Source: Cyanophora paradoxa CCMP329 (lineage: Eukaryota > Plantae > Glaucophyta). Taken from it: a DNA stretch of 64,000 nt. Below are positions 14,234 to 64,000 of this stretch, piece by piece. The stretch's first letter is position 1, and every line of letters starts with the position of its first letter. The position numbers and the translations under genes were made by a program. The notes beneath the pieces are model-generated. The model made no database searches. It saw only the letters and a list, made by a program, of their open reading frames with translations, and was not told the origin of the DNA. Location: NCBI GenBank assembly GCA_004431415.1, contig QPMI01000510.1, positions 62,001 through 126,000 of the forward strand. The letters run 5' to 3'.

Positions 14234-15312
14234 TCACTTTGTGCACGAATCTGCCAGGGCGGGGCGTCAGGGGGAGGAGGGGGATCAGTGCGGGGGGTAC
14301 AAGGGCGCACTCGAAGTAGTTCACTACCCCCGACGCCTTGTCCTTGTCCAGCTGTCAGGCGCCGAATCAGGGAGGGGACAGAGGGAGCGGAATCGGCGGG
14401 GCAGGGGGTACCGGTGCTAACAGATCCCTTGCCTCTTCCCGCTACAGGGGAGGTGAGCGAACTGAGACCCAGGACGGGTACGGAATCTGCGAGGCTTACC
14501 GTGACGGCCCCGGGGCCGGACATGAGCGCCTTCTCGAGGTCGGCAAGGCGAACGAAGCCCTCCCTCGAGCCCACCTGCGGAGGGGGGATCCAGTCAGGGG
14601 TACAGGAAGGAAGCTTGCACGGCGGGGTGGAGGGGCGGGCCTCGAAGACGCGGAAAGCCTCTTTGATCTCCGTCGAGGAAAAAGGCGGCCGCACTGCGCG
14701 GCGGCTCAGGCGCGGATGAGGGGCGAGGCGGTACCCCCCGCTACACGCGCCTTTCGTCTCCATCATGCGGACTGCGGCAAGGGCTCAGTACGGAGCCGAG
14801 GCGGGGCAGCTGGGGGAAGGCGGGCGGGCGGGCGGGCGGGCGGGCGGGCGGCGCACCGAACTGGTCGAAGTTGATCTCGATGTCGGCGGAGGGGTCTTCT
14901 TCCTCCCCGAGGAACGCGGCGACCATCCCGTCGAGCTCCTGGTCCGACGGGTTCAGGCCCTGCGCCCCCCGAGTCGGCGGCCCTTCCGGGTGGAGTGCGG
15001 CGGAGTCGGCGGAGCCGACCAGGGTCTGCATGAGGCTCTTGATCTCGCCCTTGCTCACGGCGCCCGACCCGTCCAAGTCAACAAGATCTGCCGCATCGCC
15101 TTCAGAGGCGTACGCACGCAGCTGTGCGGGCTGAGCGGCGCACTGAATATGGCTTTGAACTCCTCAACGTCCCGCATCGTCAGCTGCGGGTACTTCGGGT
15201 CTGCGAGCACGGAGAGCTTAGAGCATCCTTCCAGGAGCGCCGAAGGCAGGCTGGGCGCACGTGGCCTGTCCATGGCATCCTGTTTTTTCTGGCCCTTCGC
15301 CTTGGGCGGCAT
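14234..15312 (-). CDS. Calmodulin/centrin-like EF-hand protein
   Basis: DVEEFKAIF-LVDLDGSGAVSKGEIKSLMQTL-GLNPSDQELDGMV...INFDQF; TEIKEAFRVFE; LDKDKASGVVNYFE. Confidence 0.85.
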
Positions 15313-15595
15313 CGCGGCGGCGGCTGCTTAGCTATGCGCTCCGACGCGGTAGCAGTTGTGCTGCAGTGCTCTTGTGCTCGTCTACGAAGGGCAGGCAGTG
15401 CACGGCGCAGTCGGCGCAATCGCACTCCCACTGCAGCCGCTCGAATCTACGGCACAATACAAGGTCCCACAGGCGTGCGGCTAGGTATAGTTACACCGGA
15501 TAGCAGTGCTGCTGGGTCTGTACGGGCGTCGGGCGTGCCGACTTCGCTGCTCATGGGCTGTACGCGGTACCCCAGCCGGCTCGAATTGGCGCCAG

Positions 15596-15740
15596 TGTTG
15601 CCACTCCACTACGTACCCTTTTGCACCACGTAGCAGAATCGAGTTGGACGGGCCTATTACATGATTGCCGGGGCCCCGTGCCCAAATCCGCTTTGGGCAC
15701 GTCGGGGCTAGGGCGCGTCGTGCCCAAAGGCTTGGGCACG
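15596..15740 (+). repeat. Left terminal inverted repeat (145 bp)
   Basis: Reverse complement of 21068-21212 with one mismatch (aggcTtggg vs aggcCtggg). Contains two internal palindromes, CGTGCCCAA..TTGGGCACG. Confidence 0.97.
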
Positions 15741-15790
15741 TAAGCTTTGTGTTGGGCACGACAGGTGTTAGAGCCCAGACAGCTGCAGCG

Positions 15791-17563
15791 ATGTTGGGCC
15801 TGTCGCCGGAGGAGATTCAGGCGGCCGGCCAGATTCTGCAGTTCTGCGTCTTCTGCAGCTTCGCGCTACAGACAGCTGTGCTCGCGGGTCGCGCGTGGTG
15901 CGGCCGCAAGTGTACCTGCCACATCGAGCAGCTGATCTCGTCGTTCTCGAGCTGCGACTGCGATCACAAGGAGGGCCACCGCGGCCATTGTCCTGGCGGG
16001 CATCTTGCTAGATCTCTCTTAGATCAGCTCCAGCAGGCACGCGCGGGGCCTTCGAGCAGTTCAAGCAATGGTGGCGGGAACAGCACGGCAGCAGCTGGCC
16101 CGCCGCCTGGCGCGTATGTCGTCCCTCCGGAGCAGCGTAGGGCACCAACTGCTGCGACCCAGCGGCAATCGGACGGCTCGGACGGCGGCGCAGCGCCCAG
16201 CGAGGAAACGACCAGCACGCGGCACACCGTGCGCTGGACGTACGAAGAGTTCATAAAGGCGTGCAACGAATTAGCGCCATTCCGGAAGCACAAGGACATG
16301 CAGGACGAGCAGGGGAATCCCAACGCGGAGCGCGCACTCGACGAGACGGAACGCTACAACGCGCTGGTCTGGGAGCGGGACATGAAGGCAGCCGGGGACG
16401 CGAACGACAAGGAGGCGATCAAGCGGCTGAACGCGTCGAAGCCAGTCGTGCGTGCGCGCGTCCAGAGGAAGGACCTGGAGGCGCCAGCGGATCCGAACAA
16501 GAGCGACGAGCAGAACCAGAAGGCTGCGGAGGGGAGGGCCAAGAAGAGTAACGATCAGCGGATCAAGAACCGCACCGGCAACTACGTTCTAGTCGAGCAG
16601 CCAAACCCGCGCGACCCGAACGGACCCGCGGTGTATGTCATGCAGGAAGTGCAGGTGGCCAAGAAGCGCCAGAAGAACAACACTGGAGCGGTGGCGGCGA
16701 CGGCCCCTACTCAAGTGCGTATCTTGCCGAAGGACGCCCGCGAGGTCTTCGAAATCCTGTCGGTAAGGACGTGTCCAAACATCGTGCCCAATCGTGCTCA
16801 AACCGTGCCCGGAGCACGACGTGACGACGCGCGCGCAGGAGTACCATAACGCGGCGCACGAGGCTGCGTACACCGTCAAGGGCAAGGTTTCGCGCGTCTA
16901 TGCCATCAAAGACAAGTTCGTCGAGTACTTCTGCAAGGTGCTCGCTGCAGCTGCCCGCGCGGGGACCCTGAGCAAGACTGACACCCGTACGCAGCGCTGC
17001 CCGTACTGTGCCATCAACAGGGCGGTCGAGCTCGCTGCGAAGCTCGCGGGCATGAAGCCTATCGTCGGCCGACGAAGTGTGCTCTATGCGGCATCCTGCC
17101 CCTCCAGGCGAGACCGGCGGCTTTGCCGGGTTCAAGCATCTCATCGAGAGCATCACCGCCGCCAGCACCGAACCTGTAACCCTCAGGTCCGTCTTCCTCC
17201 AGCATTCTTTCTCAGCGCTCTGACTGCCATGTCTTGCCTGGCAGAAAAGCGTTCTTTGACTGGTGCGCCATCGAAATCGACAGGCCGAGCAAGATCTGCA
17301 ACTGCACGACTGGCTGCACGAACAAGAAGTGCATTTGCAAGTACGAAGACATCATCTGCTCGTCAAAGTGCCACAAGAAGTCGGGGAGGGACGCGTGCAA
17401 GAACCGCTCTTGCATCCAGAAACCTTGGAAGAAAGTACAGAAGAGCGCCGAGAAGGAGGCCGCTGCCGCGGCAGAGGCCGCGGCTGGCCCGCCGAGCCTG
17501 AGGCTGAGGCGGGCCCCTCTAATGCCAAGTAGTGCAGCCAGTTTACGATCGATTTTGGAATAG
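15791..17563 (+). CDS. Ginger2-type integrase-derived protein lacking the DDE catalytic core
   Basis: The spliced reading gives EVFEILSEYHNAAH...FVEYFCKRCPYC...KPIV (integrase H-H-C-C zinc finger). It passes within ~45 aa to CNCTTGCTNKKCICKYEDIICSSKCH...CKN, a Cys-rich tail like that of KRBA2/Ginger2-type integrases. Four GT-AG introns keep the frame open. Confidence 0.75.
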
Positions 17564-18183
17564 CCTTTCGTTGTGAAAGAGTTTCCGAGTCGTGCCCTCC
17601 TTGAGCATGTCCGAACTTCGTCTGGGCACGTACTTGGGCACGATTGGGCATGACGTGGGCACGAGCAAGTAGCAGAAACCGGTAAAGAGGGAGCGAACCA
17701 TGAAGCTTCATGAATACGAGTTAAACAAGGCTTCAGCATTCTCAAATTCAACTTGTGCGGCCTCTCGGACGGGTCGGAACTGCTTCAGGTCTTCGAGGCC
17801 TCATCATGAGTTCATGACCCTTGGCTTCACATCATGATGCGAGTCCGATGGTCAGACTTCTGAGCGACGCGGAACATGTCATGCTGAAGTTCTTCGCATC
17901 GCCTTTCTTCATCAAAACGTTGTAAAATATCAATACTGTTAAGTTCACATGGCAAATGTGCAGTTCAATGCGCAATCGTGCTCCGCGACGTCAATCACTG
18001 CTAAATTCAGGATCAAGTCGGTTTGGGCATGACGGGGCACATTTGGGCATGTTTGGGCACGAGCCGGGCACGACCAGTGCACGACCCAATTCTAAGGAAG
18101 ATACGCTGCAAAAACCCTAATAGAGCAACACTATCAATGCTAGTAGAGCTACTAGGACTGCTACTAGGAGATAGACACTGGAT

Positions 18184-21029
18184 CTACTTTGCCGCCGCCG
18201 CCTTTTTTTGGGCCGCAGCTAGCTTTGCGGTGTCCTGAATGAGCTGCTTGATCCCGTACACCCTAGGCAGCCCGACGGCGGATCGCCGTGCTTGTTGCAC
18301 TTGGGAAGATGTGGCCCTGCTTGTATGTGCTCTTGGACTTGACCGTCTCCCGTATGCACAGGAAGTACTTGAACTGGGATTCGCTAAGAAATGAAAGGAG
18401 AGATAAGAGGAGCAGTGCTCTCACCGCCGGAGGTGTTTTCTTGGAGTTGAGCACCTTGGAATCCGCGTGCTCGGCATCGAACTCGCACTCGAGCGTCGTG
18501 ATCTCTGCCCCCTGAACGACAGGGGCATATGCCCAGTCGTCCTCATACCCATCCAAGCTGACCGTCCAGCAGATGAAGAGAGACTGCGTGGTGCCGCGGG
18601 AATCGTCGACCAGGTCGACGGGGCCCCCGTACCGGCCGGTGTACACGTCGATCATGTACAGAATGTCGCCCTCTGGGCTCCGGCTTGCCCGCAAGGCTGG
18701 GACGATCTCTACAGGGGGGAACCGATCCCGCCACGTTTTTCTGCGTCTGACATGTCAGTCGGGCAGAAAGAAGGCACGGCGGACCGAAGAAAGCACCCTG
18801 TAGGGTCCATCGTGTTGAAGTCGTAGTGCCTCCCCTTCTCTCGCCTGCAACAGCGACGCTCCGGAATCAGATTTCGTCGGGAGAACCATGGGGCACGTTG
18901 GGGCACGATTGGGGCACGTTTGGGCACGAGAGTGCAGCACGACCAAGGACGCGACATGCCGAAATAGTACCCAGACCGTGCCCAAGCACGGGAACGCACG
19001 GGGGAGCCTGAGTGCTGGCTTCGTCGTCGCGCGAGGGCGCATGCTTGGGCCCCCTGTGCGAAGATTGCTCCTGAGCCTTGCCTGAGTGCTCCGGGTCCTT
19101 TCCCTTCGCCGCCTTCTTCTCCGGGCCAGATGCTGCCTTCAGTGAACGTCAGGTGGGGGAGAGATGCACACGTTGGACGGCGCGGGCAGCCACCTTCGAC
19201 GACGACGACGCCGACGTGTGCTCCTTCACGCTCGCTGCCCTGGGCTTCTTCGACAGTTGCGGTTCAATCTCTGTCTCCAGCTCTTCCTCAGTGTCCTTCG
19301 GCGCCGGCGTCCTCTTCTTCTTCTTCTTCTTCTTCACTGAGTCCTCTGCGTTCTGCCCACCCGTAGCCTGCGCCGGGTTTGCATGAGTGTCTGGAATGTG
19401 ACAGCGGGCGTGGGGCGTCTCGAGCACGTCCTCATGAAAGCTCACCGATTTCTCAGCACGTGGTGCCCCATTACGTGCCCAGCCGTGCCCGACGACTGTG
19501 GACGTGCCCGCGTCGTGCCCAAATGTGCCCGCGCCGTGCCCAAACGTGCTCCGGTCACGGCGGCCTCCGCCGCGTTCTCGTCCTCCGCCTCCTCGTGCTT
19601 CCGCGCCCGGTTCGTCTTCTCCGTAGCGGCCTTCTTCTCCGCTGGCGCCTTCTTGGTCGCCTTCTTCGGATGCTCGGTTGCAGCGCCGCCTCCTCCATCG
19701 GAGTTCTCGTCGTCTCTTCGCTTCGCAGCGTGAACCCGGCTCTGGTGTGTTATGCCCGACCTGGCCGCCTTCTCCTTCACTGTCGCCAGGTTCGTTTCCC
19801 ATGGCGGCTCCACGTCAGGCCTGCGGCGAGGCTTAGCGTCCATGGCGGGAGAAAGAGGGAGAAAGAGAAAGAGAAAGAGAGCGGCAAGGGCGCACTTCGG
19901 AAGGAACGGGATGTTGTCGACTGACATGATCATCGTCCATGTCCTGTAGATCCTGTTGACCTCCAGCAGTGCTCGGGTCTTCTCGTACGGGTTGAGGGTC
20001 TGGAGCCGCTGTTTCATCCGTTCCGTGCACTTCTCTTTGATCTTCGCTGGGATGCTTGAGGTCTCCACCGTCCTGTCCAGGAGGACGGCCAACCTGCGAG
20101 GCAAGGTTTGCGCTGCTCTTGTGCTGCTTCCAAAAGAACGCAGCCACTCACGCGTCTTCCATGTCTGCAATGACCAGCGTGTTCTGTCCTCTCACCTTGC
20201 TCAGGCCGTCAGCTTCCCCGTAGTGCAGACGAAACGGGGCGGCAAGGAATCGGTTCAGGTTCTTGATGTTCGCTCGCGCGCCCTTTCCAAAGATCTGCGT
20301 GCACGGCCCGTGCTCAGACGTGCCCCGTACGTGCCCGGATCGTGCCCGGATCATGTACCTGGTCTTTCGCTTGGTCAGCGCTGATCCCGCCGAAGATGCC
20401 ATCCGTGTCCAGACTGAGGAAGCGCTCATACTGCTCCAGCCCGTCATCCTCATCACCGCTCCCGCGGCGCTGCCCGCGCTGGATGCGGCCGTGGGGGCGC
20501 GAGGCGCTACCGCTGCTAGCGCTGCGGGAGCTGCAGGGCCGGCCGGTGGGAGGCCCTGCAGGAGACATCAGGCGCGGGATATCGTTCACGTTAGCTAGCG
20601 CACCAGGCCGTAGTGCGCCAGGTCGGGCTGCACTACTTTGGCCGGCGCGACGATGAGGGTAACGGGCCCTCCTCGACCACCACGGCGAACTCCTGCGCAT
20701 GCCCGAGTCCAGATCAGTCGATCGGCGTTGCTTGCACGCGGCAGTACGACTCGCACGTCATGATAGAGTCGCACAGTAGCTCCCCGCCAGCACTGCCAGA
20801 AGCGCAGCTGATCTATCTGCTGTATCTCCGGACGAAGAAGCTTCCTGTCTACCAGCTTCCTGAATATGGGCTCCGCCGACGGTATGAGCGGTGCTGGGAC
20901 CATGTTGCCCATCGTCGGCAAGCACTCCGCTGGATTGCCAACTTCGCTATGCAAGTACACACAGAACGACCACATAGTTGGAGCCTGCACGCCCCCGCCT
21001 GCCGCGCTGCCAGGCTGCTCTCCCGCCAT
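18184..21029 (-). CDS. Transposon cargo gene of unknown function (multi-exon, Lys/Glu-rich middle)
   Basis: Ordered N-terminal exons (MWSFCVYLHSEVG, FRKLVDRKLLRPEIQQIDQLRFWQCW, ERMKQRLQTLNPYEKTRALLEVNRIYRTW), a basic disordered middle (KKKKKKKR), and a globular C-terminal part (ILYMIDVYTGRY, LFICWTVSLDGYEDDWAY, QFKYFLCIRE). GT-AG introns. Exon chaining is partly uncertain. Confidence 0.6.
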
Positions 21030-21067
21030 CGCGGGGCACGACTTGGGCACGACGCTGCTCTACCCGC

Positions 21068-21212
21068 CGTGCCCAGGCCTTTGGGCACGACGCGCCCTAG
21101 CCCCGACGTGCCCAAAGCGGATTTGGGCACGGGGCCCCGGCAATCATGTAATAGGCCCGTCCAACTCGATTCTGCTACGTGGTGCAAAAGGGTACGTAGT
21201 GGAGTGGCAACA
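21068..21212 (-). repeat. Right terminal inverted repeat (145 bp)
   Basis: Inverted copy of 15596-15740, ending ...GAGTGGCAACA and followed by the TSD GCCAG. Confidence 0.97.
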
Positions 21213-22092
21213 GCCAGCCGGCGCCCGAGCTCGAGCCATAGCCAGCACCGGTACCGCCGCACTGCAAGCGAACAGCAATTTGATTAAAGTAGTTGAGGCC
21301 GATTGCAACTGTGCGGGCCGCCGAGCCGCGCGCGCGCGGATCGATATCCGGAGCACCGCGCGCGCGCGCGGCCGCGCCGCCGGCCGCGCGGGCGCCGGCC
21401 TTGGCACACTGTGACATAAGCACGACGGTCGACTCGGCGATCATCGGATCAATATATATATACTCAGAACGCACCCGGTGACCACCGCGCGCGCACGCAT
21501 GTGCACATCCGCGCGCGGCGCCCGCCGGCCGGCCGGCCGGGCGCCGACCCCTGATGCACTGCACTGTATACGTAGCTGTAGCCTCATCGGCTGTAGGCTG
21601 CACACCGGACCGGATCATCGAATCGCTCTAATCAAGTTTAGGGAAGCTTGCCTTTCGTGAGCAAGAGAATTCCGAAGAATTGCATTTGCGTTTTTTGCAT
21701 TTTACCAAGTTTCAGTTGATCATGACCTGAACGGCGAAAGCCGGCTGTTGAAACAACATACGATTCGATGCGAAAACGTGACGTGAGAGAAATTATGCGA
21801 CGAGCATGAAATGATATCGAAGATGATGTACAGAGTGACTCTTTGAGACTGCTACGAAATACGAAAGAAATTAAAGCGCGATGCGAACGACCCTTCATCC
21901 CGAACCACTCCTACTGAACTACATGTAATCGACTCGGCGAGCGACTGCACTGCCCTACGACTGCGATCTCCTCGGCTGCCTATCCTCCTCCATGAAAACC
22001 CAAACGAGCAGCACTCCGGCTGTTACTCGACTCTACAACAACAAGGACCCAAAACTGACTCGCGCGCGACGCGACGCGATGCGGGGCCACGG

Positions 22093-41300: not shown

Positions 41301-42141
41301 CGAGGCGTCGCGCCCGACCGCGCCCTCCCCTCCTCCTCCCAGGGCAAGGACGTCGCCGAGACCGACAGCTTCTCGTTCAACGGCGGCTTCCAGGTGCCTG
41401 GGATCGGATCTCAAGCCGACGCCCGCCTCGAGCCGGGCCCTGACCCCGCCCCTTTGCCTCCAGTGCAAGCTCTTCCGCGTCAAGATCGGCACCGTCTCCG
41501 CCCAGAAGGAGACCGAGAGCGAGAAGCAGGAGACGCGGCAGAAGGCGAGGCACCCCCAGTAGCGATGCAGGATGCGGCGCGGGCTGAGCGACCGCCGGGG
41601 CGCGCAGGTGGACGAGGACCGGAAGCCGCAGATCGAGGCGGCGATCGTGCGGGTGATGAAGTCGCGGAAGACGATGGAGCACAGCGCCCTCGTCGCCGAG
41701 GTCACCAAGCAGCTCCAGGCCCGGTCCGCCGCCCCCCGGCCCCGCCAGACGCGAGCCCTAGATGCCGCCCGCTCCGGCGCTAGACCGCGGGCACTGCGGC
41801 GGAGGGCCGGTCTGCCCGCCCGTGGAGGCCGAGCTCGAGGGGGCGTCGCCTAGAATGCTAGGACTGGGGCTAGGCGCTCGGCCACGCGCCGCCGCCCCGA
41901 GCCCGAAGAGCCCGAGAGGGCCCCTGGGCGCGCCTCCGCCGCTCGCCCAGCGCCGGCTCACGGGCCAGCGCAGGTTTCTGCCCAACCCGACGATCATCAA
42001 GAAGCGCATAGAGTCGCTCATCGAGCGCGAGTTCCTCGAGCGCGCCGGCGAGGGCGGGTGCGCGCCTTGCTCCTGCTCTTCCGACTCGGGCGCCGTTCGC
42101 CGATCCCTCTTTGCAGGCGGACGTACCGGTACCTGGCATAG
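38327..42141 (+). CDS. CUL3: Cullin-3
   Basis: [106 protein letters not shown], neddylation motif [29 protein letters not shown]...YRYLA*. Confidence 0.97.
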
Positions 42142-42663
42142 CTCGCCTTATGCGGCCCCTTCCGCCGCATTCCCTCCTCTCATTCCCGCCGACCCCGCTC
42201 CACCACCCTCTTTCCTCCGCTTCTCTGCCTACTTCCCGCGGCCCTCACGGCCCCGCCCGCCCCGCCCTCCCCTCCCCCTGCGGTCAAGGCGACGCGTCCC
42301 CTGCGCTGTACAGTACTCGCCGCAGCCGTCGCCTCCCACCCGCGCCCTCCCCGCAATCCACTCTCCCTCATCCTCCCCATCCTGTCGTCCTCGTCATTGC
42401 CCTTCACGGCCCGCCTGTCCCCGCTCCCCCGCGCCGCTGCTGCCCTTGCCCTCCTGTGTACTGTGCATATTGCAACAGCCTTGCATGAGAGAGCTCCAGC
42501 TGTCAATGTCCAGCTGCCAGCTGGGGAGAGGGGAATCGCAGAGATTCGCAGCTCGAATTCGAGGGGGATACCAGTTTGCTGAAATTCGAGCGAGGCGCGT
42601 CGCCGGATTGAGGCGCTTCGCGGCGCGTCGGCGTCACCTGCAGAGCTCACGCGCGCAGCGCAG

Positions 42664-43627
42664 ATGGCCAGCCGCGATACCGACCTCCCGATGGACGAGT
42701 CTGGGAAGGTACGCCGGGATTTTTGCATGCGTGCGCCTGCAGCTGTCCATGGAGCGCTAGCGCTAGCCTGCACGGCGATGTAGTTTGATCTTAGCGGCGC
42801 CGGTCACCGGGTCTCGGCGTAGAATTTCGCGGCGATCGCGAGTTCGAGCCTGCAGCAGCGCGATCGATGCTCGAGCTCTGATTTTCGCGGTCGATGTCGC
42901 GGCAAATCTGACGCGCCGTGTCTGTGCAGCCGGACATGCAGGCGTTCGTCGGAGAAACCTCGCCTTTCACGCATCAGGTGCGCTCTTCGAGTTCGAGAGA
43001 TTTCGCGCAAATTTTCACGCCGCGCCGCGCCGCGCGCGCCAGCCCTACGAGGGGTTCACACAGACGCCGGGATCGCATGGGCACGAGGGTGCGAAATTCC
43101 GATTAAGCGCAGAAGGCCTTTCTCCGCTAGCGCTGACTTCGATTCCCGCGTATATTCGCAGGCTGGACGCACGAGAAGCACGTCGGTGAGCATCCAATAT
43201 TTCAAATTAAACGCGTACACATACGTATACTTGCAATTGCGATTTCTCAGAGCGATCTCAGAGGCGGGGAGGAAGGCTGCCGCGGCGCTCTCGCACGAGG
43301 AGCGTCAGGAGCGCGCCCGCAGGGGCGTCGAGACTAAGCGCCAGCGCGGCAATCTCGGCTCTGGTTCGCGTTTTCATCCCGACGCCGACGTCGTTTTTGC
43401 GGCACTCGCAGTTCGCGATCGTGATCACAGCGCGCTTTTGCAGGAGGGGATGCCGAGCAGGGCGATTTCGCGCCGCCGCGCGGGGAGGAGACCCGCCCAG
43501 ACCAGGTAAACTATTGCCTCTACAAGTTCGAATGCGGATCATCGGATAGAAGAGCTGAGGACGCGCTGGGCGACAGGACGTGGTGGAGCTCGACGAGGGC
43601 GAGGAGGCCAACATCGACACCGCTTGA
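42664..43627 (+). CDS. Small hydrophilic protein with a KGG/LEA-like stress motif (tentative, micro-exons)
   Basis: MASRDTDLPMDESGK then a GT donor. Exons PDMQAFVGETSPFTHQ, PYEGFTQTPGSHGHE, AISEAGRKAAAALSHEERQERARRGVETKRQRG and DVVELDEGEEANIDTA*. Confidence 0.45.
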
Positions 43628-47619: not shown

Positions 47620-50573
47620 CTACGGGATGTCCTGCTCGCCAGCTACTCCTCGGGCCAGCGGCCGAAAGCCGCCGCTGGGCGGGGGCTGCCCGGCGGCGGC
47701 GATGTCGCCGGCGAGCTCGAGGGCGCCTGGGGGCGCTGGGGCGGGGGCGCGTGGGGCCAGGCGGGGCTGGCGGGGCGGGGCCGGCGGGGGTGCGGGGCGG
47801 CGAGGACGCGGACGATGTGCTCGACGACGTCCGCCCCGCAGCTGTTCAGCAGCGGCACCCGCACCTGAGGGCCGCCTCAGCGGGGGGTGGGGGTTGGGGG
47901 GGGGGAGCAGGGGCCGGAGGTCCAGCGGGCAGCGGAGGCAGGAAGGGAGGCAGGCCTCACCACAATGTGGCCGTGGGATGTCGGGCCCGGGAGCCGGACC
48001 TGCGCCCCCATCGCGAGGCGCCGGGGCTCGTCAGGGAGCGACAGAGGGCGCGGGCTGAAGAGAAGATTCGACGGGATCGCACGTCGACGCGGGTCCTGTA
48101 AACCCGATCAGAAAGAGCGAATGGGGGGGGGGGGGATACGGGCACGGACCAGGGGATGGAGTTGAGTCCCCGGTACATCTCGACGAGCGCCTCTCGCTTC
48201 GCATCCGCGCTGCGGAGAGACAGTTCTAAGGAATCGCCGCGAGTCGGGGAGGAAGGGGGGATACCGGAAGAGGACCTCCTCGTTCTCGGCCATGTTGGGG
48301 GTACCCGTGTCCCGCGGGGAGCGCGGCTCACTCGGCGGGGCGGGGGTGGGGCTGGCGGGCCGGAGGGCCGACCAGGGGCCAGAGGAGGGCGCGCCCCGGC
48401 TCGCCGGGCGGGGGGTGGGGGAGGGCGAGGGCGAGATCGAGGCCCCCCGGCTTGCCGGGCGGGGGGTACCGGGGCGGCGGCCGGCGCTCCCCGCGAGGCG
48501 GAGGGCCGCGGCCACCGAGCTCGAGGGGGGTACGCCCTCCTCAATCCCGGCACCCGTACCCGGGCCCATCGAGATCTCCCTCAGGCCCGCCTCCAGGATC
48601 GAGTCCAGGTCGGGCGAATCCGCCCCGCAGCGGTACCCCCCGCCCCCTTCCGCCGGGCAGTGGTGCGAAAGGGTCCTCTCGAGGCCGCGGAACGAGCCCG
48701 CGAGGGTACCGCCGCCGCCGCCGCGGCTCCCCCCCTCCATCGGCTCCGCCGGACAGTGGTGCGAGGCGCCGGCCGCGACTCCGTTCGCGGCTCTGCCCGC
48801 GCCGCTCGAGCATTCGCCGCCTGCTCGCGCTCAACGGAGAGAGAGAAGAGGGAGGCGGGGGGTACGGGCGCGCACGGTCGCAGGTTCCAGCAGCGCCTGC
48901 ATGACAAGCGCGAGCCTCAGAAAGAAGGCGAAGGCAGGTGGATGGGGGGCGCGGGGGGCACCGGAGGAGACGCGGACGATGTGAGGGAACTCGCGGGCGA
49001 TGGACGGCGCCTTCCTGCGCCCCGCGGCGCGTGAGCTTGGCGGAGCGAGGGGGGCGCAGGCGGGCGACGATCGGCCCTTCAAGGTGGGGCGGAGCGGACC
49101 AGATGGCACTGCGCGCCCCGACCCCGGTCAGGAGGCGGTTGGGGTTGGGCCTCGAAGCAAAGCGCGCGCGCACGACGGGGGGTCCCGGTAGGGGTTGCGG
49201 CACGCGATGGCCGCCGTGCAGTAGGGCACCCTGATCAAAACAATTCAAACGATGAACTAGAAATTTGGGAGGACGCCCGTGGGCGTGCAGGATTCGAGGA
49301 TAGGGGACGGGCGGGGTACGAGAGCAGGCGCGCGCACGTGATGTCGTTGACGGCGTTGGCGTACAGTACCCTGGGCAGGGAGCAGGGTCAGGGGTACAGC
49401 CGCGGTGTTGTGGGCGGGGGCGGGGGCGGGGGGCCCTGGGCGGAGGCGGGCGCTCACCGGTGCTCGAAGAGGGAGAGACCCTGGACGAAGCTCCCCGCTG
49501 CACGGCGGGGCGCCCGCTCGGAGGCGCGCCGCTTGCGTCCCGACACCGACTCCGGGGCGCACCGGGTTCGGACATGGCCGCGAGGAGGGGCCGACCGCCG
49601 GGCCCGTGCGCGTCCTCCAGAAGCAGCTGGCGCCCTTCGCGCGGCCGGCTCGCGTCAGAGGCGGCGCTGCGCTGCGCGGGCGCGGGGTGCGCGTGCGAGG
49701 CGGCGCGCCCGAGCGGCCGATGAGGCGCGCGGCGCCCCAGTTGAATATCTGCGCCACAGCGGCGGTGAGGCGCGGCGGGGCCGCCGATGTGGTCCCGGAT
49801 CCGGGTAACCTTGTTCCAGAGGCTCCGGGGCGAGCGGCGCGACCCCTGCGGGCCGGGTCGCGTCAGAGCGCACACGTACGAACGCTGTGCCGCACTGCGG
49901 CGGCGAGGCGGGGCGCGTACCATGTGCGGCGTTGCCATCGTTACGAAATGCTGCGGCGGTAGGGCGTGAGGGGGATGCGCTTGGGCGGCCAGCCGAAGCT
50001 CGCACGCGCCCGCGGATGGACGATGTTGAACCACTGCGGGCAGAATCGCTCAGAAACGAGGCCGAACGAGCTCGGAGGATGGCGGGAGTGCAGACTGACC
50101 CCCTCCTCGAACATCCTGCCTACGGCGTAGCGCGCGTACAAGCCTCCGAGGCTGTATCCCAAGATCGAGAACTCCTCGATGGTCGGATTGAGGATGATCG
50201 CCGTGCGGATCTCCGAGTACAACCGCTCGCCGCCCTTGTCGATCCCATCTTGTAGCGAAATTGGTCGGCGGAGCGGGCGGGGAGCGGGCGGACATCTCTC
50301 GTACGCACCGAACGAGCGCTCCAATGCATTGCACGACGGGTTCAGCTGCGAGGGCGCGACAATTAGTGGGCGCGCGGTGTCGAGCGATCCGCGTGAGCGG
50401 AGGATGAGCGCAGTGGGAGCCTCGCGCACGACGAGGGCGCGCGGGCAGGCGCGCGAAGCGATCGCATCTTGCAGGTACTGCAGGTGGCCTGAGGTCCCCA
50501 GAAGCCCATGCACGAGGACAACGAGCTGCACGGGACTCTCCGCATCTGAGAGCGGGCGCGGCGAAGCCGACAT
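47620..50573 (-). CDS. DUF676 putative serine esterase/lipase (alpha/beta hydrolase)
   Basis: LVVLVHGLLG, DGIDKGGERL, nucleophile elbow GYSLGGLYARYAVG, FVTMATPHMG, VLYANAVND, VPYCTAAI. Confidence 0.88.
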
Positions 50574-50945
50574 CGCGCCGCGCATGCCGCGCTGCGCCAC
50601 AGGCCGAACGAGGCGAGCCAGCGCAACGCTCGAGTTGCCGAGAATCCTGCAGCGCTGCGCCGAGCTCGAGGCCGAACGAGCGCTGTGCGACGCCGAGGGA
50701 ATTTGTACCCCTGGGTAGAGAAGTGTAGTTCTGGAAACCAGCCGCGCCGCAGTTGAGCCACAAACCAGCCTCACCGCAGCTGACACAGTTAACGTGGTAG
50801 CTCCAGTGCCCACGAGCTGCGCCCCAGAAGAGCGCCCCTCGCCTGACACCGTGCCTCGTTTTCATCATCGGAGTACATCTGGATTGCCTTCTGCCTGTCG
50901 ACGTCCCCCCGGCGCCCTCCAGTGGCTGAGCGCTCAGGCAGGCGC

Positions 50946-63462: not shown

Positions 63463-64000
63463 GAGGCCCACGCTAGCGCACTTGGCTCCCTTTCTCCTCC
63501 GCATCTAAAACCCCGGCCGCTCTGATGAGCAAAACTCACATTCTTATCTACATTGCATGAGGCCCCCGCGGCCGCTGACTACCTTCTGCAATCCTGAGGC
63601 CCACGCTAGCGCATATAGTTCACTTTCTCCTCCGCATCTAGAACATCGGCCGCTCTGATGAGCAAAACTCACATTCTTATCTACATTGCATGAGGCCCCC
63701 GCGGCCGCTGACTACCTTCTGCAATCCTGAGGCCCACGCTAGCCCATAACTCCCTTACTCCTCCGTATCTAGAACCTCGGCCGCTCTGATGAGCAAAACT
63801 CACATTCTTATCTACATTGCATGAGGCCCCCGCGGCCGCTGACTACCTTCTGCAATCCTGAGGCCCACGCTAGCGCACTTAGTTCCCTTTCTCCTCCGTA
63901 TCTAGAACCTCGGCCGCGCTGATGAGCAAAACTCACATTCTTATCTACATTGCATGAGGCCCCCGCGGCCGCTGACTACCTTCTGCAATCCTGAGGCCCA
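63463..64000 (+). repeat. Tandem array, 131-133-bp unit, at least 4 copies, running off the window end
   Basis: GATGAGCAAAACTCAC recurs at 63524, 63657, 63788 and 63921. Confidence 0.97.

Follow-up and report, generated by a model that had tools for sequence, protein, structure and literature searches.

Phased GGGCACG arrays and an orphan partner gene in a Ginger2/TDD-like transposon of Cyanophora paradoxa

The transposon-encoded, sequence-specific anti-silencing systems returned by a literature search (VANC, TnpA and AtMu1) were all from flowering plants. VANC proteins, which carry DUF1985 and DUF287, bind dense same-orientation motifs in the non-coding parts of their own elements (PMC5735166), and their action removes methylation in a sequence-specific manner. 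Motif clusters at the termini are bound by TnpA and by the AtMu1 transposase, leading to hypomethylation, and the AtMu1 transposase needs no partner to bind its motif and activate copies of its element (10.64898/2026.08.24.746577). The stretch described here, hereafter called the window, consists of 64,000 nucleotides of Cyanophora paradoxa CCMP329 (assembly GCA_004431415.1, contig QPMI01000510.1, positions 62,001 to 126,000). It contains, at positions 15596-21212, a transposon with two genes, an integrase-type transposase (gene 1) and an orphan partner of 714 amino acids (gene 2), along which arrays of the word GGGCACG recur. C. paradoxa has both DNMT1 and DNMT3, with a CpG methylation of 32 %, and its repeats, transposons and silent genes are methylated (PMC12344493). 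The arrays are considered here as putative docking sites for a protein made by the element itself.

Distribution and phasing of the GGGCACG word

GGGCACG occurred 32 times in the element, compared with 1.4-5.8 expected from Markov models; an enrichment of 14- to 20-fold was confined to the element. In the 58-kb flanks the word was at chance level, with 22 occurrences observed and 22-30 expected. Between the terminal inverted repeats (TIRs) it was found 24 times compared with 1.3 in dinucleotide shuffles (shuffle maximum 5), and TTGGGCAC was found there 16 times compared with 0. With one mismatch allowed, 22 of the 27 close same-strand motif neighbours were spaced by 10-11 bp, one turn of the helix (binomial p about 1e-17), and neither a 10-11 bp spacing peak nor a phased GGGCACG run was present in the gene-dense 58-kb flanks. 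The enrichment over background on which the initial annotation depended and the two motif palindromes per TIR which it described were borne out. All the clusters it named exist, in arrays which are specific to the element and recur every 0.4-1.1 kb from one end to the other, as listed below with the element boundaries.

15591-15595, plus strand: left target-site duplication (TSD), GCCAG
15596-15740, plus strand: left TIR, 145 nt, with two inverted motif pairs (15677-15701 and 15719-15740)
15754-15760, plus strand: subterminal motif directly upstream of the integrase start
16763-16838, minus strand: intron 1 of gene 1, phased array with minus-strand motifs at 16770, 16783, 16793 and 16804
17624-17663, plus strand: phased array of four motifs, 3' of gene 1
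18025-18083, plus strand: phased array of six motifs, 3' of gene 2
18891-18983, plus strand: phased array of four motifs and one inverted motif (18977) in gene 2 intron 18845-18999
19452-19558, minus strand: array of eight motifs within coding exon 6 (19446-19820) of gene 2, in a charged low-complexity linker
20298-20347, minus strand: phased array of five motifs in gene 2 intron 20295-20358
21034-21051, plus strand: two motifs, 11 bp apart, directly upstream of the gene 2 start
21068-21212, minus strand: right TIR, 145 nt, likewise with two inverted motif pairs
21213-21217, plus strand: right TSD, GCCAG

The first motifs lie 82 bp inward from the element tip, and arrays are found in three of the 13 introns, in the 3' regions of the two genes, in the subterminal zone at either end and in a single coding exon. 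The arrays had been described as mainly non-coding, which agrees with 27 of the 32 exact motifs, but the remaining five are coding and a restriction to non-coding DNA does not hold. Similarly, arrays were recovered in intron 1 of gene 1 and in two of the gene 2 introns (18845-18999 and 20295-20358), but ten of the 13 introns have none, and the supposed intron cluster at 19455-19555 lies within the retained exon 19446-19820. The (CCCCG)n runs, reported for host introns, numbered 42 in the host part of the window and 0 in the element.

Read evidence was taken from the contigs of four runs, one of DNA and three of RNA, the latter recognized as such because GT..AG joints were seen in them and were absent from the DNA run. 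The coding array at 19452-19558 lies within a GT..AG segment of 108 nt (36 codons) which keeps the reading frame, was retained in contigs of all three RNA runs, and is translated in the gene models of three other copies (P0005, P0008 and P0011). The segment looks like a retained or exonised intron, perhaps rarely spliced.

The 3-4 nt spacers between motifs diverge, whereas the word and the period are kept in seven separate clusters on both strands. The conserved word, the 10-11 bp phasing and the divergent spacers together suggest that word and phase are under selection. Relative to the mRNA, arrays face either way, and a candidate double-stranded DNA site is therefore favoured over a splicing signal; an RNA-level or splicing motif is unlikely, since introns hold both orientations and ten of the 13 introns lack the motif. 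The word includes a CpG, and five of the six changes at this CpG are to TG or CA.

The two genes, their copies and the insertion site

The genes, the transposase domains and the deletion junction are as follows.

15791-17532, plus strand: gene 1, integrase-type transposase; exons 15791-16762, 16839-16937, 16995-17186 and 17245-17532
16839-17009, plus strand: H2C2 zinc finger (Pfam Integrase_H2C2), split by the intron 16938-16994
17067: deletion junction, with at least 1505 nt of the integrase core gone and a 1-nt microhomology
17297-17404, plus strand: C-terminal cysteine-rich region of the transposase, a candidate DNA-binding module
18184-21029, minus strand: gene 2, orphan partner, 714 amino acids in 11 exons, from RNA contigs
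Introns of gene 2: 18374-18424, 18741-18796, 18845-18999, 19137-19193, 19368-19445, 19821-19895, 20094-20151, 20295-20358, 20556-20603 and 20693-20756

RNA contigs confirmed the splicing of the three introns of gene 1. Its zinc finger was matched by Integrase_H2C2 on residues 320-365 of P0003 (E 1.4e-4; 22.3 bits, below the curated 25.5). The catalytic core is deleted at 17067 in this copy, and the 3' part of gene 1 is thereby out of frame. At this position both DNA and RNA contigs exit the window sequence and then rejoin it. Their loose ends are in-frame integrase sequence, KPIV and then a strand ending RVVI, and the right loose end continues into the frame of the C-terminal exons. DNA contigs hold extra bases here, 1505 in one and 291 in a second, and this copy therefore lacks at least 1.5 kb, perhaps 1.77 kb. 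By depth arithmetic, and with contigs dropping rare forms, no contig spanned the junction as it stands in the window, which may be either a genuine deletion of a single copy or a fault of the assembly. The sister model P0002 contains the Glu-containing half of a retroviral-type core (rve_3, E 0.016; IS481, E 8.8e-5; solved integrases, E 0.0045), with the two Asp residues outside the part seen. The transposon family probably has a core, and the core-less state on which the initial annotation built is a deletion in this copy. A core-less integrase as a designed protein is ruled out, since the contigs re-enter 17067 in frame with the integrase and P0002 contains part of a core, and the proposal of such a protein as a dedicated binder is unsupported.

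The transposase has a long N-terminal region in addition to the C-terminal cysteine-rich region. The latter had no match in Pfam or PDB, and the spacing of its cysteines resembles that of CRC/tesmin-type zinc clusters. Neither a YPYY nor a GPY/F motif was visible in the retained parts of gene 1, from which at least 1.5 kb is missing in this copy. A GT..AG joint from 15897 to 17245, seen in run X15, skips nearly the entire transposase and makes a stop at the junction. This splice is possibly non-productive and may limit the transposase; a short isoform with only the cysteine-rich region is ruled out by the stop. At 16392 a DNA contig departs into sequence which resembles the integrase core in one frame, representing a second deletion subfamily; model P0001 ends here, and the depth beyond is half.

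Nine of the ten introns of gene 2 were seen as RNA joints, and the intron 19821-19895 was deduced from the length of an RNA contig. Six single bases, behind 17487, 18260, 18302, 19477, 20463 and 20670, were absent from the window and present in all four runs. These gaps are probably long-read assembly errors, the alternative being damage to this copy, and the gene 2 frame is open over 714 amino acids once the read-supported gaps are filled. The partner was spliced in RNA runs of three studies and was modelled on six other contigs, lying on tig00020848 two gene numbers from an integrase model. It is a stable, spliced, family-wide component. The models on other contigs and the neighbouring integrase gene rule out a one-off gene capture, and the presence of this cargo gene in other family members, on which the initial annotation depended, was confirmed. 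A minor non-canonical joint of gene 2, from 18392 to 18818 (ends GA..TG, five letters between), was present in all three RNA runs and is probably a deleted copy rather than splicing.

Database queries were exons, open frames or EukProt models, and the joined spliced model was used for local comparisons. The matching proteins were C. paradoxa gene models from eight contigs, those of the partner being 95-100 % identical over ungapped stretches. A search of 1.84 billion representatives with P0007 returned copies from this genome only, plus one chance match. Nothing usable was obtained with partner exons or models from Pfam, PHROGs, NCBIfam, PDB sequences or the Atlas, in which a feature match to fungal clusters (0.93, 123 shared features) was a weak lead only. 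No relatives were found in viral contigs, metagenome contigs, phages or plasmids, the metagenome search having used a narrow pattern instead of a generic integrase motif. P0004, P0010 and a phage P1 region were irrelevant.

The partner has a long charged linker and three hydrophobic regions, at about residues 18-120, 158-300 and 545-714, which are probably globular. Single-sequence AlphaFold models, made of parts upstream of its C-terminal domain, were poor (pLDDT, the predicted local distance difference test, 38 and 49), and fold searches with them gave no match. In the model with pLDDT 49, the middle domain begins with helices, which are followed by a three-strand sheet and then by more helices, a succession that a winged-helix type could show. 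A suspected identity of this domain as Bro-N-like, KilA-N or APSES was not supported: with E values of up to 10 allowed, residues 158-295 had no Pfam match, a profile built from 15 viral Bro-N-like proteins scored -0.7 bits (28 % of shuffles as good), and hhalign gave a probability of 0.06 for the Bro-N-like family, the model with pLDDT 49 being too weak to exclude the fold. A BAH-like C-terminal and a ubiquitin-like N-terminal domain, suggested by eye, had no support in Pfam, PHROG, NCBIfam or the Atlas, and DUF1985 and DUF287 had no Pfam match in any part of the partner. Since database and fold searches all failed to match, the partner is without an established DNA-binding domain.

DNA contig depth was 427-847 over the element and 50-105 in the flanks, which, depth not being copy number, agrees with a young multi-copy family. 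RNA contigs confirmed the splicing of both genes, with transcripts that cannot be assigned to single copies. Derivatives of the family carry local duplications and deletions. In one of them, seen in RNA contigs of two runs, the left TIR is joined to the 3' end of the integrase gene (15668 to 17118) via a short duplication of TIR sequence; its contig was very deep in X15, depth being a poor measure of expression. At 15760, RNA and DNA contigs diverge into unrelated sequence, which is another derivative or a sister family with a common left end.

The TIRs of the element are complementary at 99 %, and its termini are TGTTG..CAACA. At the single insertion site examined, the TSD is 5 bp (GCCAG). 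The GC content is 55-63 % in the element and mostly 65-85 % in the flanks. The insertion lies about 280 bp upstream of a host gene encoding an EF-hand protein (14741-15312, minus strand). Other host genes in the window are a cullin C-terminal piece (41762-42760, plus strand) and a DUF676 esterase piece (49941-50849, minus strand). To the right of the element, a short GC-rich palindromic stretch (21356-21390) is all that several contigs of DNA and RNA have in common, and it is probably a small repeat in its own right. At 63463-64000 there is a 133-bp tandem repeat of at least four copies, 94 % alike, which continues past the window end.

Possible roles of the arrays

The preferred reading, to which a probability of about 0.45 is given, is that an element-encoded, sequence-specific DNA-binding protein docks on the arrays cooperatively, all along one face of the helix, and maintains the activity of the element. 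The protein would most likely be the 714-amino-acid partner, which is favoured about 2:1 over the transposase. By binding along the full length of the element, it would mark copies as self and would keep their CpG-rich DNA transcriptionally open in a transposon-methylating host, as VANC and TnpA do in plants; such a role is plausible because the host methylates transposons at CpG (PMC12344493). The deleted copy would be mobilised in trans, yet could still supply the partner. Docking is supported by the position of arrays kilobases from the ends and even in coding sequence, neither of which end recognition needs. The enrichment and phasing of the word, its two orientations, its CpG with the changes seen there, the family-wide spliced partner and the CpG methylation of the host count in favour of docking too, and so does the fact that VANC and TnpA targets are defined by dense arrays of motifs in one orientation (PMC5735166, 10.64898/2026.08.24.746577). 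In a more specific version, which we regard as doubtful, the orphan partner would polymerise on the phased CpG arrays, coding DNA included, and block or reverse methylation by DNMT1/3, as an independently evolved anti-silencing system, and other word-protein pairs might serve sister families of this genome.

Several observations speak against docking. Database and fold searches found for the partner no DNA-binding domain, no homolog outside this genome and no fold, and GGGCACG is also present in the TIRs, the usual location of transposase sites. Transcripts also come from a derivative which has lost the arrays of the left end. In X16 and X18, RNA contigs pass the right TIR (21213) into the flank of another copy (about 1.2 kb in X16); the transcripts may stem from a single copy or a small number of copies, or gene 2 may be read through from the host. 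The word might be the transposase's own site, its TIR pairs serving end recognition and the internal arrays synapsis, titration or autoregulation of the two genes, while the partner would have another task, for example in target choice or as a cofactor. The two inverted pairs per TIR with the extra subterminal copies would suit this explanation, as would a transposase whose long N-terminal and cysteine-rich regions could bind DNA, and the AtMu1 transposase activates its copies by itself (10.64898/2026.08.24.746577). It appears unlikely, however, given that the nearest end is 1-3 kb away from six of the arrays, one of which costs 36 codons, that the motifs begin 82 bp inside the tip, and that the cysteine-rich region has no database match.

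Recruitment of a host factor (a transcription factor, a remodeller or a demethylation-linked protein), or positioning of nucleosomes, by arrays acting as captured enhancers or methylation-free islands is rather improbable. A host reader is possible for a word which occurs at chance frequency in host DNA, a binding domain was detected in neither of the element's proteins, and a periodicity of 10-11 bp also suits nucleosomal DNA, but the 58 kb of gene-dense flank contained no phased GGGCACG cluster. It is very improbable that the arrays are functionless, neutral, minisatellite-like slippage products seeded from TIR sequence. Tandem Repeats Finder (TRF) detected 21-bp-period repeats in three of the clusters and derivatives show local duplications and deletions, but plain recent slippage is argued against by word and period persisting in seven clusters on both strands while the spacer sequence varies, by the strength of the phasing (p about 1e-17), and by one array being held in frame within coding sequence. 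Docking of an element-encoded protein is directly testable, since an enzymatic methyl-sequencing (EM-seq) methylome exists (PMC12344493) and full-length and deleted copies provide natural controls. If true, it would mean that this counter-defence evolved convergently in a glaucophyte, close to the base of Archaeplastida and in the face of a CpG-only DNMT1/3 methylome, and would yield a new DNA-binding protein whose target is phased and 7 bp long.

Comparison with described elements

Ginger2/TDD elements have TGTNR termini, TIRs of 45-297 bp, a TSD of 4 or 5 bp, an H2C2 zinc finger and a Gypsy-like DDE integrase core, and they lack the YPYY and GPY/F motifs of Ginger1 (PMC2836005). By its ends, TIR, TSD and domains, the present element fits an internally deleted copy of a young two-gene cut-and-paste transposon of Ginger2/TDD-like kind, the kind which the initial annotation had proposed; both of its genes are spliced in RNA contigs. 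It shares with TDD-4 and TDD-5 the TGTNR ends, a TIR of 145 nt within the range, the 5-bp TSD, the H2C2 finger, introns, non-autonomous derivatives and, at the level of the family, probably the retroviral-integrase-type core (PMC2836005). It differs from them in the convergent 11-exon second gene, the internal phased arrays and the GC-rich target, none of which is mentioned in the passages of that paper that were consulted. The AT-rich RTATAY target preference of metazoan members, to which GCCAG in GC-rich DNA does not conform, was derived from Nematostella elements (PMC2836005) and is not defining for TDD. A literature search of partial coverage returned no description of a Ginger2/TDD-like element which combines an accessory gene with internal phased arrays, and within that coverage these two features set the element apart within its kind.

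With the VANDAL elements of Arabidopsis and their VANC proteins (PMC5735166, PMC10398659), the element shares an accessory gene adjoining the transposase, a host which methylates transposons, a short motif which forms dense arrays of one orientation within introns, between genes and towards the termini, and a repeat-like variable region in the accessory protein. In contrast to these, its transposase is integrase-type and not Mutator-like, its TSD is 5 bp, DUF1985 and DUF287 are lacking, its intact TIRs hold the motif, the phasing of 10-11 bp is strict, and one array is coding. Terminal motif clusters are also found with TnpA of Spm/CACTA and with AtMu1, the known readers of which are element-encoded and owe their specificity to motif density (10.64898/2026.08.24.746577). 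Binding and hypomethylation are, however, terminal only in TnpA and AtMu1, whereas the Cyanophora arrays are mostly internal, and the Cyanophora partner, unlike these readers, has no detectable transposase-derived domain. Spm/CACTA has CACTA termini and subterminal arrays, the Cyanophora element TGT ends and six internal arrays. The element is a member of neither the VANC nor the TnpA family, and its likeness to both is one of anatomy only.

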